Source: Adineta vaga (Eukaryota; Animalia; Rotifera). Taken from it: a DNA stretch of 64,000 nucleotides. How positions within the stretch are numbered: the stretch's first letter is position 1; the number at the start of each line of letters is the position of its first letter. Shown one piece after another: positions 28,303 to 35,042 of this stretch. The stretch lies in assembly GCA_021613535.1 (NCBI GenBank), contig CP075495.1:8246001-8310000 (forward strand), in the 5' to 3' direction. Made by a program: the position numbers and the translations under genes. The notes beneath the pieces were generated by a model. The model ran no database searches, was not told where the DNA came from, and saw only the letters and a program-made list of their open reading frames with translations.

Positions 28303-28315
28303 ATTATATTATGAT
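28303..28315. repeat. Target-site duplication, left copy
   Basis: ATTATATTATGAT, identical to 33580-33592. The terminal bases are ambiguous with the element ends. Confidence 0.88.
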
Positions 28316-28657
28316 TTTTTTTTTTTTTTTTTTTTTAAATTCGCTTTCTTTATTGTGACACTCGGAAGTGCTAACAATTAATGTTTGTCATACAGCAAGG
28401 ATTTCACTACCCGTACAGATAACAATTTCTTACGATACATCACATACTTCACTTGCACTTATCCACGTTTGGTGATATTAAGAGAAAAGGAGAAAGGGTT
28501 AATAAGGAGTCACGAAAGGAAAAGAAAAGAAGTACGTGCGAGGAAAAAAAGGGAAGCGTTTACGATCGAAAGCGAAAATAGACAGGAGAGGAAGAAAAAG
28601 AAAAGAACAAAATATGATTCATATAGAGGAGTATCTCAAAACAGCAAGGCTGTGTCT

Positions 28658-31630
28658 TCACATGTATAAAAAGTTAAGCCATTGAAGTAACAGACATTGA
28701 TGTCTCTCTATTTGTAGTTTTACTCTTTTCAGTTGGAAAAAATGGCCCACGTAGTCATTTTTTGTTTTTTGATATGTATCCCAATAGAAAATATCGCTAT
28801 GGAATGACGAACGTATTAGATCGGTTTTCTCAATTCTTTCAAGTCTTTTCTTCATATATCTTTTGATGTAAAAATCTATATTATTTTCTTTAGTTATGTG
28901 GAATAGATCTGTTGCTCTAGCATAGGGACATCGATGAACCAGCCTTAACCCGTTACGGAATTTTCTTTCAAGACATTCTTTTTGAGTTTCTGTGAGTATG
29001 GGATATAGAGGAAATATCCATGCGAAGTAGGGAAAGCTATAGGCAAAAAAACATTTACGCAGAACGTCTGTCGATAGGCTTTTACCACTCTTAATCCATT
29101 TTAGTTTAGCAAATGTTTTTTGTATATTTTCGAGGGTTTTGTCAATTGTGGGCTGCAAGGACATCTTACTGGTCCATGTAAAACCTAAATATTTAAATTC
29201 TTCTACCTGTTCTAATTTGCGTCCTTGCATGGACACGTCTACTATCTGTTTTTGTACTTGTGAATAGAAAACTTGAACTACTGTTTTTGCTAAATTAATT
29301 GGTTGTTTCCACTTCTTCGAGTAGTCCGCTATCTTATCACAGACTCTCGTACCTTCTACTTCCAGAAAGTCGATCATAGGTTTGAGCTTTTTCGTTATTG
29401 AAGGAGTTATTAGGACGCTGAGGTCATCTGCAAATATGTGGCTTGCATGAGCACCTATACATGAAATCATATCACTATGATAAACAATAAATAGGTATGG
29501 GCTAAGGCTACTACCTTGCGGTAGGCCTGTGTGCATGTAGAGAACTCTAGAGTTGTGATCCCCATAATTTACATAAGCTCTTCGATTGCTCAGCCACGCA
29601 AGTAATAATTTCAGTATTCCTAGTGGTATACCTAATCTTTTTAGTTTGACTAAGAGACCTTTATGCCAGACTTTGTCATAAGCTTTCTGATAATCTACAT
29701 ACACCGCTAGTGTTGGTATATTCCCTGCCATATTATTTTTAACTTCCTGGTACATTGACAAAACTCTTGTCGGAAGAAGACAACCAGGACGGAAACCAGA
29801 TTGTTCATCCGGCACTAGTTTATTTGTTTCGGACCAGTGTCTTACTCTTTCCAGAATTATCTTTTCGAATATTTTAGAGTGCGTAGCTAAAAGTGAGATA
29901 GGACGTGTTTGATCACATCGAGGAACACCTGTTTTTAACTTATTAAGAGTAATTAATTTTGCTATTTTCCAAAAATCAGGATATTTGTATTCACTAATCC
30001 AAGAGTTAAAACAGTTCACTAGGCAATTAATATAGCCTGGAGGTACTCTTTTAATTATCGAGTTCGATATTTTGTCCAGCCCCGATGAGTTTTTTGGTTT
30101 AAGTTTCTTAATAAACTTTTTTACTTCCAATTCATTCGTTCTTTCTATCTTTTCATTCGATAATGACAACTTATGTATTAGCTCGCTATATTCTGTTTCT
30201 ATTTCTACATCATGTGGATCGCTCATGTCCATTATTTGTTCCTGAAACTGATCTGAATAGTATCGGTAGAGTTCGTTGCTAATTTCCATTCCGTTGGATA
30301 TTATTTTTTTGCCTGTATCTAACTTTGAGAATGCTGTTGATCTTGGTCTATATACGCGCGATAGGTGAGACCAAAAAGCTCTTTCTTTGTTGTCATGAGT
30401 CTCTTGAATTTTATCCAAAAACTCTTGCCATTTACTCGATTTATATTTTGCTATTTCAATTTTTACTTCTCGGGTCATAACTCGCAATAATATCCTCATC
30501 TCTTCATTATCCGTACCAGAATTTTTCGTATGATAGTATTTATTCCTTACTTTCTTTACTGCTTTTAGTTTCTCAATTAAATACGAAGGCAATGATGGTC
30601 TGAATTTTTCTTTTTCTTTCCATGTTGTTAGCCTATTTTTCAGAGCAGCGAGAAATCTTACATAGTTAGTATACCATTCATCTGCTTGAGTCCCGATGTT
30701 TTGCTCTCTCGTCCAGAAATTTTGTAGTAGTACAAGAATTGCTTCATAAACTTTCCAGTTGACATATGGAAACATCCCACTTTCCTCAATACCTATTTTT
30801 TCGAATGTGACTAATATAGGCCAGTGATCACTCGTACCAATAAGTGGAGTTTCACATCTTACTGCATCTATATTTGTAAACGCTAAATCTATGTTTCTCT
30901 CCGAACGTTTTGAAGAGTGGTGAGTCGATGGGATGTAGTACAGATTATTTCTTTCGACCCATTCTTTTACTTTTCGACCTCTAGTATCCGTCGTCAAGCT
31001 ACCATATTCTTTTGCTGTTGCATTAAAATCTCCGGTTATGATAGTGTTCTCAGTAATATAACTTTCTAACTCCTCTAGTGAACTACTCTGTTCAGCCGGC
31101 CAATATATTGCTATTATTCTGATTGCTTCTGTGCCTATACTTACGTCTACAATAACTATATTTTTAATATCAATGTTTATTCGTGTTCCCTTTAAATGTT
31201 TTCCTACTGCGACACAAACACCTCCACTTTTATTTGTTCCATCTTGATGGAAGATATCAAAATGGGGTACTTTCGTGGTGTTCCAAAGCTCTCCTACTTC
31301 TGTGAACACGCATATAGATGCTTCTGTTTTATATACCATATCGGTGACCTCTAAACTTCTAGATCCCCATCCTAGGACATTATAACAAAGAATTATAAGC
31401 GGCGATTCTTTAGTAATGTTTTTCTGTCTAGTAGTCTCCCACTGGGAAAAAAAATTTTCTAATGTTCCTGCTGCGTACCACTCTGTAAGCATTTTATCTA
31501 CTAGTTTTTGATCATTCTGATGAAAACCCCACTGAAAAAGCTGGTTCATCGCTATTTCTTTCTTATTAATGGTCTTAATGGGATAAAAAGGTTTAGCTTC
31601 GGCTTTTAAATGTGAAGATAAGACACTCAT
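28658..31630 (-). CDS. LINE ORF2: AP endonuclease plus reverse transcriptase (990 aa)
   Basis: APE motifs YNVLG, VFTE, GDFNA, IDL, SDH. RT motifs RPISLL, QSGFR, DYQKAYD, GLPQGSSLSP, IFADD, KYLG. No obvious RNase H or C-terminal CCHC. Confidence 0.96.
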   Translation of the reverse strand: MSVLSSHLKAEAKPFYPIKTINKKEIAMNQLFQWGFHQNDQKLVDKMLTEWYAAGTLENFFSQWETTRQKNITKESPLIILCYNVLGWGSRSLEVTDMVYKTEASICVFTEVGELWNTTKVPHFDIFHQDGTNKSGGVCVAVGKHLKGTRINIDIKNIVIVDVSIGTEAIRIIAIYWPAEQSSSLEELESYITENTIITGDFNATAKEYGSLTTDTRGRKVKEWVERNNLYYIPSTHHSSKRSERNIDLAFTNIDAVRCETPLIGTSDHWPILVTFEKIGIEESGMFPYVNWKVYEAILVLLQNFWTREQNIGTQADEWYTNYVRFLAALKNRLTTWKEKEKFRPSLPSYLIEKLKAVKKVRNKYYHTKNSGTDNEEMRILLRVMTREVKIEIAKYKSSKWQEFLDKIQETHDNKERAFWSHLSRVYRPRSTAFSKLDTGKKIISNGMEISNELYRYYSDQFQEQIMDMSDPHDVEIETEYSELIHKLSLSNEKIERTNELEVKKFIKKLKPKNSSGLDKISNSIIKRVPPGYINCLVNCFNSWISEYKYPDFWKIAKLITLNKLKTGVPRCDQTRPISLLATHSKIFEKIILERVRHWSETNKLVPDEQSGFRPGCLLPTRVLSMYQEVKNNMAGNIPTLAVYVDYQKAYDKVWHKGLLVKLKRLGIPLGILKLLLAWLSNRRAYVNYGDHNSRVLYMHTGLPQGSSLSPYLFIVYHSDMISCIGAHASHIFADDLSVLITPSITKKLKPMIDFLEVEGTRVCDKIADYSKKWKQPINLAKTVVQVFYSQVQKQIVDVSMQGRKLEQVEEFKYLGFTWTSKMSLQPTIDKTLENIQKTFAKLKWIKSGKSLSTDVLRKCFFAYSFPYFAWIFPLYPILTETQKECLERKFRNGLRLVHRCPYARATDLFHITKENNIDFYIKRYMKKRLERIEKTDLIRSSFHSDIFYWDTYQKTKNDYVGHFFQLKRVKLQIERHQCLLLQWLNFLYM

Positions 31631-33466
31631 CTATCTGATCATATTTTGATTATGTTCAGTGTTCGATTTGTAATTGTCGGCTGTCTTGGCTTGATCCATT
31701 GGTGATAATTGTGGTTGTGGTGAGTTGATTTGATTTCGATGCATCGTATGTTCTACATACAATTGCTTAATACAATCACCAGTAGTATCAAAAAGTTTTT
31801 GTAATTCTGCTTGTTTGTGTGCTAGTCCTGCTATATTTTTGGACATCAATGGCCAAATAAAACTATGAATTATATCATTTTGTACTTGTAAGCATTTGAT
31901 GATTATGTCCTCATGAAGTCGAATATTTTGTCTTGTTTGTTCCATCTTACTGTTGACTTGATCTATTTTATCGTCAATACATTTGATAATTTCCTGCGTA
32001 TTTATCATATTTTGATTTAAGGTATGCAGCAGTTTCATTGGTTCATCATCCATACTTCCATCGATCATTGTTTGCGGTTGAGTTGACTGTTGTTTCCATG
32101 GATTGGGTTTCGATGATATTGATGGCAGAGCTGGAAATTCATTTGGATTCATTTGACATTGTTTCTGCTGAGTTCCAGCTTGTGGTATTGACCGTTTCAA
32201 TTTTCCAGCTGCAATAGCCTCATCCACTTGTTGCTTCAATTCGTTTCGATATTCCATTATTTTCTCACAAGCATTTGATAGCGAGTGGTGATCCCCTTGA
32301 CATTGAGCACATCGGGAAATATTCGAACAATTGTGAGTTTGTCCGTCAAGCAGATTGTCTAGGCAGGTACGACAACGTGGATGTTCCATTTCACATTGAT
32401 TTCTCATATGACCTATACACCAACAACGAGTACAAAATGTCATTTTGTTACCTGTTAAGAAGGGTGTAATTGTGCAGAAGCTATTTCCAATTGCTAGTCT
32501 TCCTAATTTTAATGTTGAGTTGTATTCACGAAGATCTTTCACCATAAAGCGATAGTCGTTTGATTTCCGTTGAAAGCGATATTGGATGCGTCTTACATTC
32601 TCCATAGATTTTATGCTTTTCTCGATTTCTCCTTTGACAAAATCGTCGGAGTATTGTGCTGGTACATATCGAACTACCAGAGCGAATGAGTCTGGAATAA
32701 ACTTAGGTTTAATAATTGTGATACCAATATTATTGATTTGAGTTGGCCAATGTGGAGTAGATACTAATGTTGCATATATTTCTTTATCATTAACTCCTAA
32801 TTTTAATCTGTTGCCTGCGTGTCCGACAAGTGAAAAACTTATTGAGATTTTGTTTGCCTTGAAATGGTCTTCAATTATTCCAGCAGCTACTACGTCCGAT
32901 GGACGAGCATTCGAGTCTTCTGTTTGATCATATTCTATGAAGAAGCATGGCAAATTGCTCGATACCGCTCGTCTCAGTTGTTCGAAAGGAATACGTTGTT
33001 GATGCTCTTTTGTTTCTGATAAATTATCCTGGTTTGGTCTATAAGTTCGACGATTAGTTGTAGGTGGTGTTTTTTGCGTTGTTGATGATGTTGTATTTTG
33101 ATTTGAGCTATTTTGTCTAGGATTTGATCTAATTCGTTGTTGTTTAGCTACTTGGTTACCATCATTCTCACTTTGTTCCAGACCACGTTTCGGTGTACAA
33201 GGTGTAGATGTTTCTAACTGATGGTTCGTAGGTTGCTGATTGGATGTATGCGAAAAGTTTTGATGTATGGCGAGTGCAAAACCGGGATTTTCACGAATTT
33301 GTGCAATCATCTCTTCTAAATCGTATGTCGTTGAGCTGTTGTTCATACTTGTATCTTTCTGTTCACTTGATTTCGACGTTGAGCTCGAGTTTTGGCTATT
33401 TATTTTCTGTTTTTGCAATGAGAGTTTTGGCTTGAAGTAATAATTCTCATTATTATTTTTCCCCAT
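31631..33466 (-). CDS. LINE ORF1 (gag-like, 611 aa, three zinc knuckles)
   Basis: CTRCWCIGHMRNQC, CRTC..HNC and CAQCQGDHHSLSNAC after an RRM-like region, followed by a C-terminal coiled coil. Confidence 0.92.
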   Translation of the reverse strand: MGKNNNENYYFKPKLSLQKQKINSQNSSSTSKSSEQKDTSMNNSSTTYDLEEMIAQIRENPGFALAIHQNFSHTSNQQPTNHQLETSTPCTPKRGLEQSENDGNQVAKQQRIRSNPRQNSSNQNTTSSTTQKTPPTTNRRTYRPNQDNLSETKEHQQRIPFEQLRRAVSSNLPCFFIEYDQTEDSNARPSDVVAAGIIEDHFKANKISISFSLVGHAGNRLKLGVNDKEIYATLVSTPHWPTQINNIGITIIKPKFIPDSFALVVRYVPAQYSDDFVKGEIEKSIKSMENVRRIQYRFQRKSNDYRFMVKDLREYNSTLKLGRLAIGNSFCTITPFLTGNKMTFCTRCWCIGHMRNQCEMEHPRCRTCLDNLLDGQTHNCSNISRCAQCQGDHHSLSNACEKIMEYRNELKQQVDEAIAAGKLKRSIPQAGTQQKQCQMNPNEFPALPSISSKPNPWKQQSTQPQTMIDGSMDDEPMKLLHTLNQNMINTQEIIKCIDDKIDQVNSKMEQTRQNIRLHEDIIIKCLQVQNDIIHSFIWPLMSKNIAGLAHKQAELQKLFDTTGDCIKQLYVEHTMHRNQINSPQPQLSPMDQAKTADNYKSNTEHNQNMIR

Positions 33467-33546
33467 TTATTAAAAAACGAGGAAAAAAGTAAGTAAATAA
33501 GAAGAGAAAAAATGAAGAAACAAAAGGAATGTATGAATGGTGCGTG

Positions 33547-33580
33547 CGTCTATTCACGAGATAGACAAGGATGAGAATGA
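33547..33580 (-). promoter_or_regulatory. Internal Pol II promoter of the LINE (Inr + DPE)
   Basis: The minus strand starts TCATTC with A+1 at 33578, and AGACG occupies exactly +28 to +32 (33551-33547). Confidence 0.72.
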
Positions 33581-33592
33581 TTATATTATGAT
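33580..33592. repeat. Target-site duplication, right copy
   Basis: ATTATATTATGAT, identical to 28303-28315. Confidence 0.88.
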
Positions 33593-33756
33593 GCGACATA
33601 TGTGTTTTTGTTCTTTTCTTTAGTCAAGGTTAACCATTTTTTTTTCGATCGTTTTCTTTTTTTGAGTAGTTTATTATAATTTATTTTTTTCGGAAAAAGA
33701 AAAAGCACAAAGAAAAACGAAACTGATGAAGAAAAGAAAGTCGAAATAAGATCTGA

Positions 33757-35042
33757 TCAATGTGGTCGCATAGTTTTGAATACATTGACAAATTTGTCGA
33801 ATGCTTCTTGTGAACGATTTCTTCTCATTCCAAGAGAAGTTGCTGCTGCCGATGTCGTTGGTATTGCTCCTGAATCTGTTGGACTAGAATTATTTGAATG
33901 ATCAAATCGTACTTGATCATAATCTTCATCCGTGATATCATATCCATGTGTAATAATTAAAATTAATAAACGTTTGATTTCCATAATATCAACATGAGTT
34001 TTAATTGTTTCATCAAGTGTTTCATCGTATATTTTCGAATATTCTAAACAAATTTCACCTAAATCTTTCTCTTCATGTCCGATTATTGTTCGTATCACAG
34101 TGGGATAATCGATAGGTACTTTTTCTAAAGCTTGTCGAAGAGCTTTTGAATAATAAACACCAGGTGATCGTGTATATTCGACAATATCTTGAAAACATTC
34201 AATATGATTTTGTCCTTGAAATTCTCGTTCAATTGCTTCTTGTATAGGTCCTCCATATTTATCTTCATAAATATCGAATATAGCTGCTAATTGTGAGAAA
34301 GCATCATGTGTAAAAATCTTGATAAATGTATCATAATCAATTCCTGGTGTACCTTCACCAGCTTCATATAGTTTTTTAGCAATCATTTTTGCAACTGTCA
34401 CTGAATGTCCTGGTTCTTCATAACGTTTTCCAAGAAGCAAATTAATTAATAACTGTGATGTAATACTATCTGAACCTTCTACAAGTTCAATATCTTTTTC
34501 AATAGGATTTTCAAATAAAGTTTCGTAAGTTTCTTTCATTTTTTGTGCATCTTCATTATTTAATGCTAATAGAATTTCAACTAATTTTCTTGATATATCA
34601 TAATTGATTTTATCCATTAGTTTCAATGTTAATAAATCATGAAAATCACGTGCATATAATTCGATGGGTTCAATTAACATCGCTAATGTGCATGAACGCA
34701 TAGGTGATTCTGGTCGTTCAAGAACCATATCAACAAGTTTATATTCATATTCAAATTCAAGATCATGAACAAGTATTATACGTTGTTCACAGGTATAAGA
34801 TGAAAGAAAATGAAGAATATAATCTAAATCTAATGTATGCGCTGTAATACAATGTTTCATTATTTTACATAGATGTTTTGTATCACGTTTATAATCGAAA
34901 TCTGTCGTATGACCAAACGAAGGAACAGTTGATTGTCTCTGAAGATTTGAGAAAAAGAAAAAATTAATTATTTAATGTTTAATTAAAGGATATTTACCTT
35001 CAATGAAGCTCTAGTTAGTAAACGATTAGATAAGACATGCAT
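33757..35042 (-). CDS. Divergent annexin-like protein, 2 exons
   Basis: AKKLYEAGEGTPGIDYDTFIKIF, IQEAIEREFQG, YYSKALRQAL, VIRTIIG..EKDLGEI. The first exon MHVLSNRLLTRASLK splices in frame. Confidence 0.8.

Follow-up and report, generated by a model that had tools for sequence, protein, structure and literature searches.

The window analysed here is a stretch of 64,000 nucleotides from the rotifer Adineta vaga (assembly GCA_021613535.1, contig CP075495.1, positions 8,246,001 to 8,310,000 of the forward strand), and it carries on its reverse strand an intact, recently inserted, poly(A)-tailed Hebe-like long interspersed nuclear element (LINE) with two open reading frames, ORF1 and ORF2. The ORF2 protein (ORF2p) joins an apurinic/apyrimidinic (AP) endonuclease to a reverse transcriptase (RT), and ahead of the endonuclease it bears an N-terminal extension that opens with MSVLSSHLKAEAKPFYP, exactly as described in an initial annotation of this DNA made from the sequence alone. 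That annotation put the extension at about 75 residues; the extension is there, although its length is 77 residues, with the endonuclease opening as L-x-I-L-x-Y-N-V-x-G-W at residue 78. The subject of this report is a 12-residue peptide within the extension, SHLKAEAKPFYP, which resembles PAM2, the short motif by which host proteins bind the MLLE domain of PABPC, the poly(A)-binding protein of the cytoplasm. PAM2 has the consensus LNxxAxEFxP and is borne by Paip1/2, eRF3, ataxin-2, Tob, PAN3 and a LARP4 variant (Pfam PF07145).

All four PAM2 residues that the initial annotation had picked out (L3, A7, F10 and P12 in PAM2 numbering) are found in the window peptide, and L8, A12 and F15 of ORF2p stand for the three main MLLE anchors (position 3, hydrophobic; position 7, the small residue Ala; position 10, Phe or Trp). 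In crystal structures it is Leu3, Asn4, Val/Pro5, Ala7, Phe10 and Pro12 that touch MLLE (PMC2854688; PMC7356810), and the positions conserved among the rotifer elements (3, 4, 5, 7, 10 and 12) are these same contacting positions. In AlphaFold2 models residues 1-20 have no secondary structure and low confidence (predicted local distance difference test, pLDDT, below 50 in a 340-residue model and ~61 in a 77-residue model), and are followed by a confident three-helix bundle at residues 23-65 (pLDDT 85-92) and then by the endonuclease fold; the tail is left undocked on the remaining protein. As modelled, the N-terminal tail is a disordered and accessible segment of the kind in which PAM2 motifs occur, and it appears to be the expected setting for a short linear motif.

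The three-helix domain always follows the motif and is limited to bdelloid elements. An earlier idea that its conserved W-G-F ... E-W-Y ... W segment might be a UBA-like domain was dropped: a three-helix bundle is indeed predicted, but a Foldseek comparison of the domain with the PDB gave no match with E <4.

The motif appears to lie at the real N-terminus of ORF2p. In the window the ORF2 ATG stands immediately 3' of the ORF1 stop codon (UAGAUG), and the ORF2 frame has no open codon upstream. The junction was compared with those of seven related elements that have an ATG start, taken from the same genome and from public assemblies; the offset of the ATG from the ORF1 stop is 0 in the window element and in L029 (UAGAUG), -8 in L002, L003 and L027, +1 in L024, -17 in L025 and +5 in L026, and all three relative frames of ORF1 and ORF2 are seen. 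An ORF2 AUG that overlaps or abuts the ORF1 stop, the arrangement of the SART1 type, is therefore found in eight elements. As relatives place this ATG between -17 and +5 nt from the ORF1 stop, in all three relative frames, the N-terminal placement of the motif would hold for the family; ORF2 is predicted to be translated from the ATG abutting the ORF1 stop in the style of termination-reinitiation, so that the motif would leave the ribosome first among the parts of ORF2p. A frameshift or readthrough fusion of ORF1 and ORF2 in a fixed frame is excluded, because the relative frame varies among relatives. The further possibility raised in the initial annotation, that ORF2 begins downstream at MNQLF, also fails, since the residue at that place (Met28) is I, L or V in many relatives and cannot be the start for the family, and the ATG beside the ORF1 stop is conserved. 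An eighth relative (L028, relative P0023) has no ATG at its ORF2 start, and the gene caller took a TTG at +14 nt relative to the ORF1 stop. Its ORF2 frame is already open 9 codons before that, overlapping the ORF1 stop in the -1 frame (L028:2391-2410). This element may be a decayed copy or may use non-AUG initiation.

The initial annotation had named lack of conservation in related elements first among the observations that would count against a PAM2 motif, and the opposite was found: nearly every complete N-terminus of the family carries it. Among 87 ORF2 relatives, nearly all of those with a complete N-terminus show it inside the first 20 residues, in forms such as LNVHAKVFFP, LNPNASAFAY, LNVNANNFYP, LLNVYARPFFP and LSVRAKPFFP. 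When 34 complete N-terminal modules with 22-55% identity to the window over 77 aa are aligned, M1, A12, F15, E50, W51, W64 and E65 stand out as invariant or nearly so; the first 40 residues contribute only M1, A12 and F15 to this set, and A12 and F15, which correspond to PAM2 A7 and F10, are each conserved in at least 90% of the sequences. F15 is invariant in 26 sequences that span the N-terminus and the endonuclease, as are columns of the catalytic site. A profile of the 77-residue module retrieved 53 proteins only among 1.84 billion cluster representatives, most of them starting in forms such as LNPNASPFHP, SSLNVNAPPFLFP or NPYAKEFFP. A regular-expression tally counted 60 module-bearing proteins with the motif core, 48 of them at 12 bits or more; its pattern was too loose and caught unrelated regions, and these positive counts alone are used. 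In the genome of A. vaga itself (100.8 Mb in 6 contigs) the motif is present in six of six module copies; a divergent copy (L035) has MSLSPFASPFF, and of two decayed copies one retains the motif (L034) and the other only a remnant (L033). The conserved residues are encoded by different synonymous codons (TTA, TTG, CTT or CTA for L and GCT, GCA or GCC for A, with P codons varying too), and hence the constraint acts on the peptide. Taken at the level of sequence, selection on the protein has maintained the motif throughout the family.

Two further sets of sequences were noted. A related family in the same genome (L039, G000:C5:2533898-2537227, with a 1006-aa ORF2) starts MNPNAQTYKS, with the initiator Met at PAM2 position 3 and Y in place of F10, and the start of protein P0111 (MNPNALTYAHA) resembles it. 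In gene models from Rotaria in which ORF1 and ORF2 of one subfamily are fused (P0062:530-541, P0064:503-514 and P0169:430-441) there is a second PAM2-like stretch, SLVPVANEFYN, which lies in the ORF1 frame ~35 residues ahead of the expected ORF2 start.

Likeness to PAM2 was quantified using the Pfam model PF07145 and a position matrix built solely from 12 host PAM2 sites, which were collected by a PF07145 search of the genome. The Pfam model is the sole match for the N-terminal 30-mers of 6 of 10 relatives, at 13.2-19.6 bits (cut-off 20), and it gives 14-23 bits to PAM2 sites of the host. Those sites include SGLNPEADEFVP, GGLNVNAMEFVP and SGLSAEAKEFVP (L021), the last of which is closely similar to the window peptide. 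With the host-derived matrix the window 12-mer scores 18.6 bits, and the next best among 979 windows of ORF2 scores 5.1; the relatives score 12-21 bits, and for most full-length relatives whose N-terminus is complete the N-terminal window ranks first of ~980. The control set comprised 109,383 windows past residue 45 of all retrieved proteins; only 5 of these score 12 bits or more, and not one gets to 18. ORF1 has no PAM2-like site, its best score with the same matrix being 3.5 bits. The conclusions are drawn from the Pfam model, from the matrix of host sites and from the structures cited, and not from a strict ELM-style PAM2 pattern. Family conservation, Pfam matches close to the cut-off and host-matrix scores agree in supporting what the initial annotation had proposed, that the ORF2p peptide is a conserved motif of PAM2 type. 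A pair of host genes (L014 and L021) has PAM2 sites very near the window peptide, one starting with MSTSPSSGLSPEAKEFVPL and the other having an N-terminal peptide with SSSGLSAEAKEFVPL.

Several observations weigh against assigning the peptide to PAM2. At position 4 the window copy carries K, whereas the N or S that is usual there touches Glu587 and steadies a beta-turn (PMC2854688), and because of this residue the copy is classed as PAM2-like and not as canonical PAM2. Most lineages carry the core LN[VP]xAxxF, with N or S at position 4, which suggests that this canonical form is ancestral to the family and that the subclade of the window element has moved position 4 to K/R. Position 9 is seldom the usual E anywhere in the family. 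The window's own peptide has no match to PF07145, and no relative attains the 20-bit cut-off of that model. The motif is lost or degraded in a few family members (P0031 and P0052), and in a distant sister group of the same genome (L047, L050 and L051) the N-terminus is degenerate or missing. Outside rotifers no motif was found in ORF2s, in a small sample with unreliable gene models; a profile search with distant ORF2s returned almost only bdelloid proteins, together with a few unrelated LINEs that lack the motif. Finally, the same genome contains an abundant LINE family whose 907-aa ORF starts MLSLCHININ and opens directly on the endonuclease, with no N-terminal extension and no PAM2, and which yet ends in AATAAA and ~22 A. 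Poly(A) LINEs in this host can therefore do without PAM2, and an exclusive link between PAM2 and the poly(A) tail is ruled out. This family (L056-L066 and L069/L070) is the commonest in the genome among LINEs with an endonuclease of this type.

A receptor for such a motif is encoded by the host. The genome contains at least four PABPC MLLE exons with KITGMLLE, one of which (L005), aligned with human PABPC1 over 71 residues, agrees with it at most positions; together with the next exon it retains 16 of the 16 residues that contact PAM2 in PMC2854688 (Q560, G563, E564, F567, G579, K580, T582, M584-E587, K606, A610, V613, L614 and H617), and the MLLE pocket of host PABPC is intact. A UBR5-like MLLE, likewise with KITGMLLE and followed by a HECT-like region, is also present (L010).

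Residues 6-17 of ORF2p are read here as a PAM2-type short linear motif that would bind the MLLE domain of PABPC and serve capture in cis, and we assign this reading a probability of roughly 0.6. L8 and F15 would dock in the two hydrophobic pockets of MLLE; the docked PABPC would be one sitting on the poly(A) tail of the mRNA from which ORF2p is being made, and the nascent enzyme would thereby be tethered in cis beside the 3' end that is the template for target-primed reverse transcription. As a side effect, other clients of MLLE (eRF3 and deadenylase adaptors) may be excluded. The odds look a little better than even for the broader proposal, that throughout the family a genuine PAM2 at the N-terminus of ORF2p seizes the PABPC MLLE on the tail of its own mRNA upon exit from the ribosome; this would be the first transposon-encoded PAM2 and a convergent solution to cis-preference, reached through another PABP domain than the RRM1 contact proposed for human L1.

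The conserved N-terminal peptide might instead have some other role, such as contact with the ORF1 protein, a helical or endonuclease contact within ORF2p itself, localisation or processing, in which case its likeness to PAM2 would be superficial. This explanation gains from the break in the consensus at position 4 of the window copy, from the residue other than E at position 9, from Pfam scores that stay below the cut-off and from the constancy with which the adjoining three-helix domain accompanies the motif; we nevertheless consider it unlikely, given that the conserved positions are exactly the six MLLE contacts (N4 and V/P5 included in most lineages), that AlphaFold shows no docking of the tail on the rest of the protein (pLDDT <50) and that chance likeness at this score is <1e-4 per window. 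A different question is raised by the UBR5-like protein described above, since the peptide could be a true PAM2 whose receptor is the MLLE of a UBR5/HYD-type HECT ubiquitin ligase, with a role in the turnover of ORF2p or in recruitment of the ligase. Solved structures of UBR5 MLLE are homologous to the rotifer MLLE, and the host gene is there to supply the receptor, whereas PABPC MLLE copies outnumber it, a role for PABPC is obvious where the template has a poly(A) tail, and the position at the extreme N-terminus suits co-translational capture of mRNA more than recruitment of a ligase; a receptor of this type seems distinctly improbable.

Two other accounts would do without any function of the peptide. 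Conservation could reflect an RNA signal past the restart codon that promotes termination-reinitiation, a suggestion that draws on the effect of RNA structure past UAAUG on initiation of SART1 ORF2 (PMC3894237) and on the location of the motif 16-51 nt past the ATG. Conserved RNA structure at the junction was rejected, however, as RNAalifold, run on eight junctions, found 0 conserved pairs and the fold of the window junction is like that of shuffled sequences (z = -0.68), and the use of different synonymous codons at the conserved L and A also speaks against it; this account is very hard to sustain. That the match is due to chance and has no function is scarcely credible: short motifs do arise randomly and the strict pattern fails at one position of the window peptide, but the absence of any control window at 18 bits and the conservation of the motif at the same place in dozens of diverged lineages refute chance for practical purposes. 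The preferred reading remains that of a PAM2-type motif directed at PABPC.

The coordinates of the element and its parts are collected in Table 1. ORF2 encodes an AP endonuclease and RT and no RNase H, and ORF1, which has no Pfam match at all, has CCHC knuckles; these features, together with the CATT start, the target-site duplications and the poly(A) that closely follows AATAAA, are those of a Hebe-like element of jockey-clade type (for Hebe, see PMC2861651). The placement as jockey-clade type, to be read as probable, draws on this common anatomy and on the relatedness of the element to Hebe-like copies elsewhere in the genome. The window element is single-copy at high identity; the copies nearest to it in the genome share 41%, 36% and 32% identity with it across the first 100 residues. 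Its close protein relatives all come from bdelloid rotifers (Rotaria, Adineta and Didymodactylos), and related elements also terminate in AATAAA and poly(A).

Table 1. Features of the Hebe-like LINE, in window coordinates
Feature	Position	Strand	Basis
Full-length Hebe-like (jockey-clade type) retrotransposon without long terminal repeats (non-LTR), 5,265 bp	28315..33579	-	5' start CATTCTC at 33579; poly(A) end; flanking duplications
5' target-site duplication TCATAATATAAT, 12 bp	33580..33591	-	same as 3' copy
ORF1, 611 aa, gag-like, three CCHC knuckles	31631..33466	-	
ORF1 stop and ORF2 start, UAG AUG, same frame	31628..31633	-	
ORF2, 990 aa: N-terminal tail, three-helix domain, AP endonuclease, RT	28658..31630	-	
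Predicted disordered N-terminal tail, residues 1-22, bearing the motif	31565..31630	-	AlphaFold2
PAM2-like motif SHLKAEAKPFYP, ORF2p residues 6-17	31580..31615	-	translation, alignments, host-derived matrix
Three-helix domain, residues 23-65; E50, W51 and W64 invariant, E65 near-invariant	31436..31564	-	
AP endonuclease, residues 83-272	30815..31384	-	Pfam PF14529, PF03372; fold in AlphaFold2 model
RT, residues 568-818	29177..29929	-	Pfam PF00078, E 4e-28
3' untranslated region (3'-UTR) hairpin GCACU-UCCG-AGUGU, just 5' of the poly(A) signal	28358..28371	-	conserved
AATAAA polyadenylation signal	28349..28354	-	
Poly(A) tail, 22 A, 12 nt past AATAAA	28315..28336	-	
3' target-site duplication TCATAATATAAT, 12 bp	28303..28314	-	same as 5' copy

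The 3' end has a further conserved feature in the hairpin upstream of AATAAA, a 5-bp stem with a tetraloop that four divergent Hebe-like families have retained at their 3' ends (in the relatives at L027:4195-4215, L036:443-460 and L037:540-556, the last with an altered 3' arm and loop, GCACU-CAAG-GGUGC). The z-score of the fold is weak (-1.75); the hairpin may be a recognition element for RT or a part of the context of the poly(A) signal. Beyond the 5' end of the element lies an annexin-like ORF (33757..34860, reverse strand) with three Annexin repeats (Pfam), and the LINE is inserted ~165 bp past its stop in the same orientation (window 33592-34860), probably within or just past the 3' UTR of the annexin-like gene.

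It has long been asked how the enzyme of a LINE locates the mRNA that encodes it (cis-preference) and the 3' end of that mRNA. If the proposed contact is real, a second LINE clade would have evolved docking to PABP independently, and capture of PABP by the nascent protein would appear as a general, selected solution. The system would also offer a simpler experimental handle, consisting of a 12-residue peptide with known knock-outs (F10 and L3) and a conserved receptor, and transposable elements would join the few genetic parasites in which host PAM2 motifs are mimicked.

Comparison with the PAM2 sites of host proteins shows the same length of 12 residues in a disordered region, with the order hydrophobic (position 3), N/S (4), P/V (5), A (7), F (10) and P (12); this scheme is followed by the consensus of the family, S-x-L-N-V-x-A-x-x-F-x-P, and host sites of the same genome are nearly identical to it. 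The LINE motif differs from host PAM2 in being encoded by a LINE, in lying inside the first 20 residues, in rarely having E at position 9, in the K/R at position 4 of the window subclade and in scores just below the Pfam threshold.

Hebe, a jockey-clade LINE of A. vaga, has two ORFs, three CCHC knuckles, an endonuclease and RT, a CATT start, poly(A) ~11-12 nt past AATAAA, duplications of 7-12 bp, no 5' truncation and a low copy number (Gladyshev and Arkhipova 2010, PMC2861651). The window element agrees with it in ORFs, knuckles, endonuclease and RT, CATT start, spacing of AATAAA and poly(A), duplications, lack of 5' truncation and low copy number, and differs in belonging to a sister family (its first 100 aa share 41% identity with the Hebe-like copy L002) and in having a longer ORF1 (611 aa); the Hebe paper makes no mention of an N-terminal ORF2 motif. 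At the junction of the two ORFs the resemblance is to SART1 (Kojima et al. 2005, cited in PMC3894237), which, as far as that citing account describes it, likewise has a start codon adjoining or overlapping the ORF1 stop without a spacer. Relative to the UAAUG reported there for SART1, the junctions of these rotifer elements consist of UAGAUG, overlaps of 8 or 17 nt or gaps of 1-5 nt, and in contrast to the downstream RNA structure described for SART1, no such conserved structure was found by RNAalifold in the eight rotifer junctions.

The closest functional parallel is human L1, where AlphaFold3 predicts that RRM1 of PABPC1 binds a 'PIE' segment of ORF2p (residues 272-297; Ghanim et al. 2025, PMC7617806). 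When PIE is mutated, both retrotransposition and co-localisation with PABPC are lost, and the authors propose that co-translational capture leads to cis-preference and brings ORF2p to the 3' end (PMC7617806). In the initial annotation the N-terminal PABP contact was not known to have been described for such elements. For the motif itself this stands, as a full-text literature search for PAM2 jointly with LINE, non-LTR or ORF2 terms retrieved no paper describing PAM2 in a LINE; the concept of nascent ORF2p binding PABPC, on the other hand, has been published for human L1 (PMC7617806). In both systems an element with poly(A) has a segment of ORF2p that is proposed to bind cytoplasmic PABP while nascent and perhaps to shield the tail. 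The L1 segment, however, lies in a linker after the endonuclease, is predicted to bind RRM1 and not MLLE, has no PAM2 pattern and belongs to the L1 clade, whereas the rotifer motif is found at the extreme N-terminus of an element of jockey-clade type. Because interface, location and clade all differ, a function shared with L1 PIE would be convergent; what is new is a known class of motif in a new bearer, and a known ORF2p-PABPC concept reached by way of a different interface.

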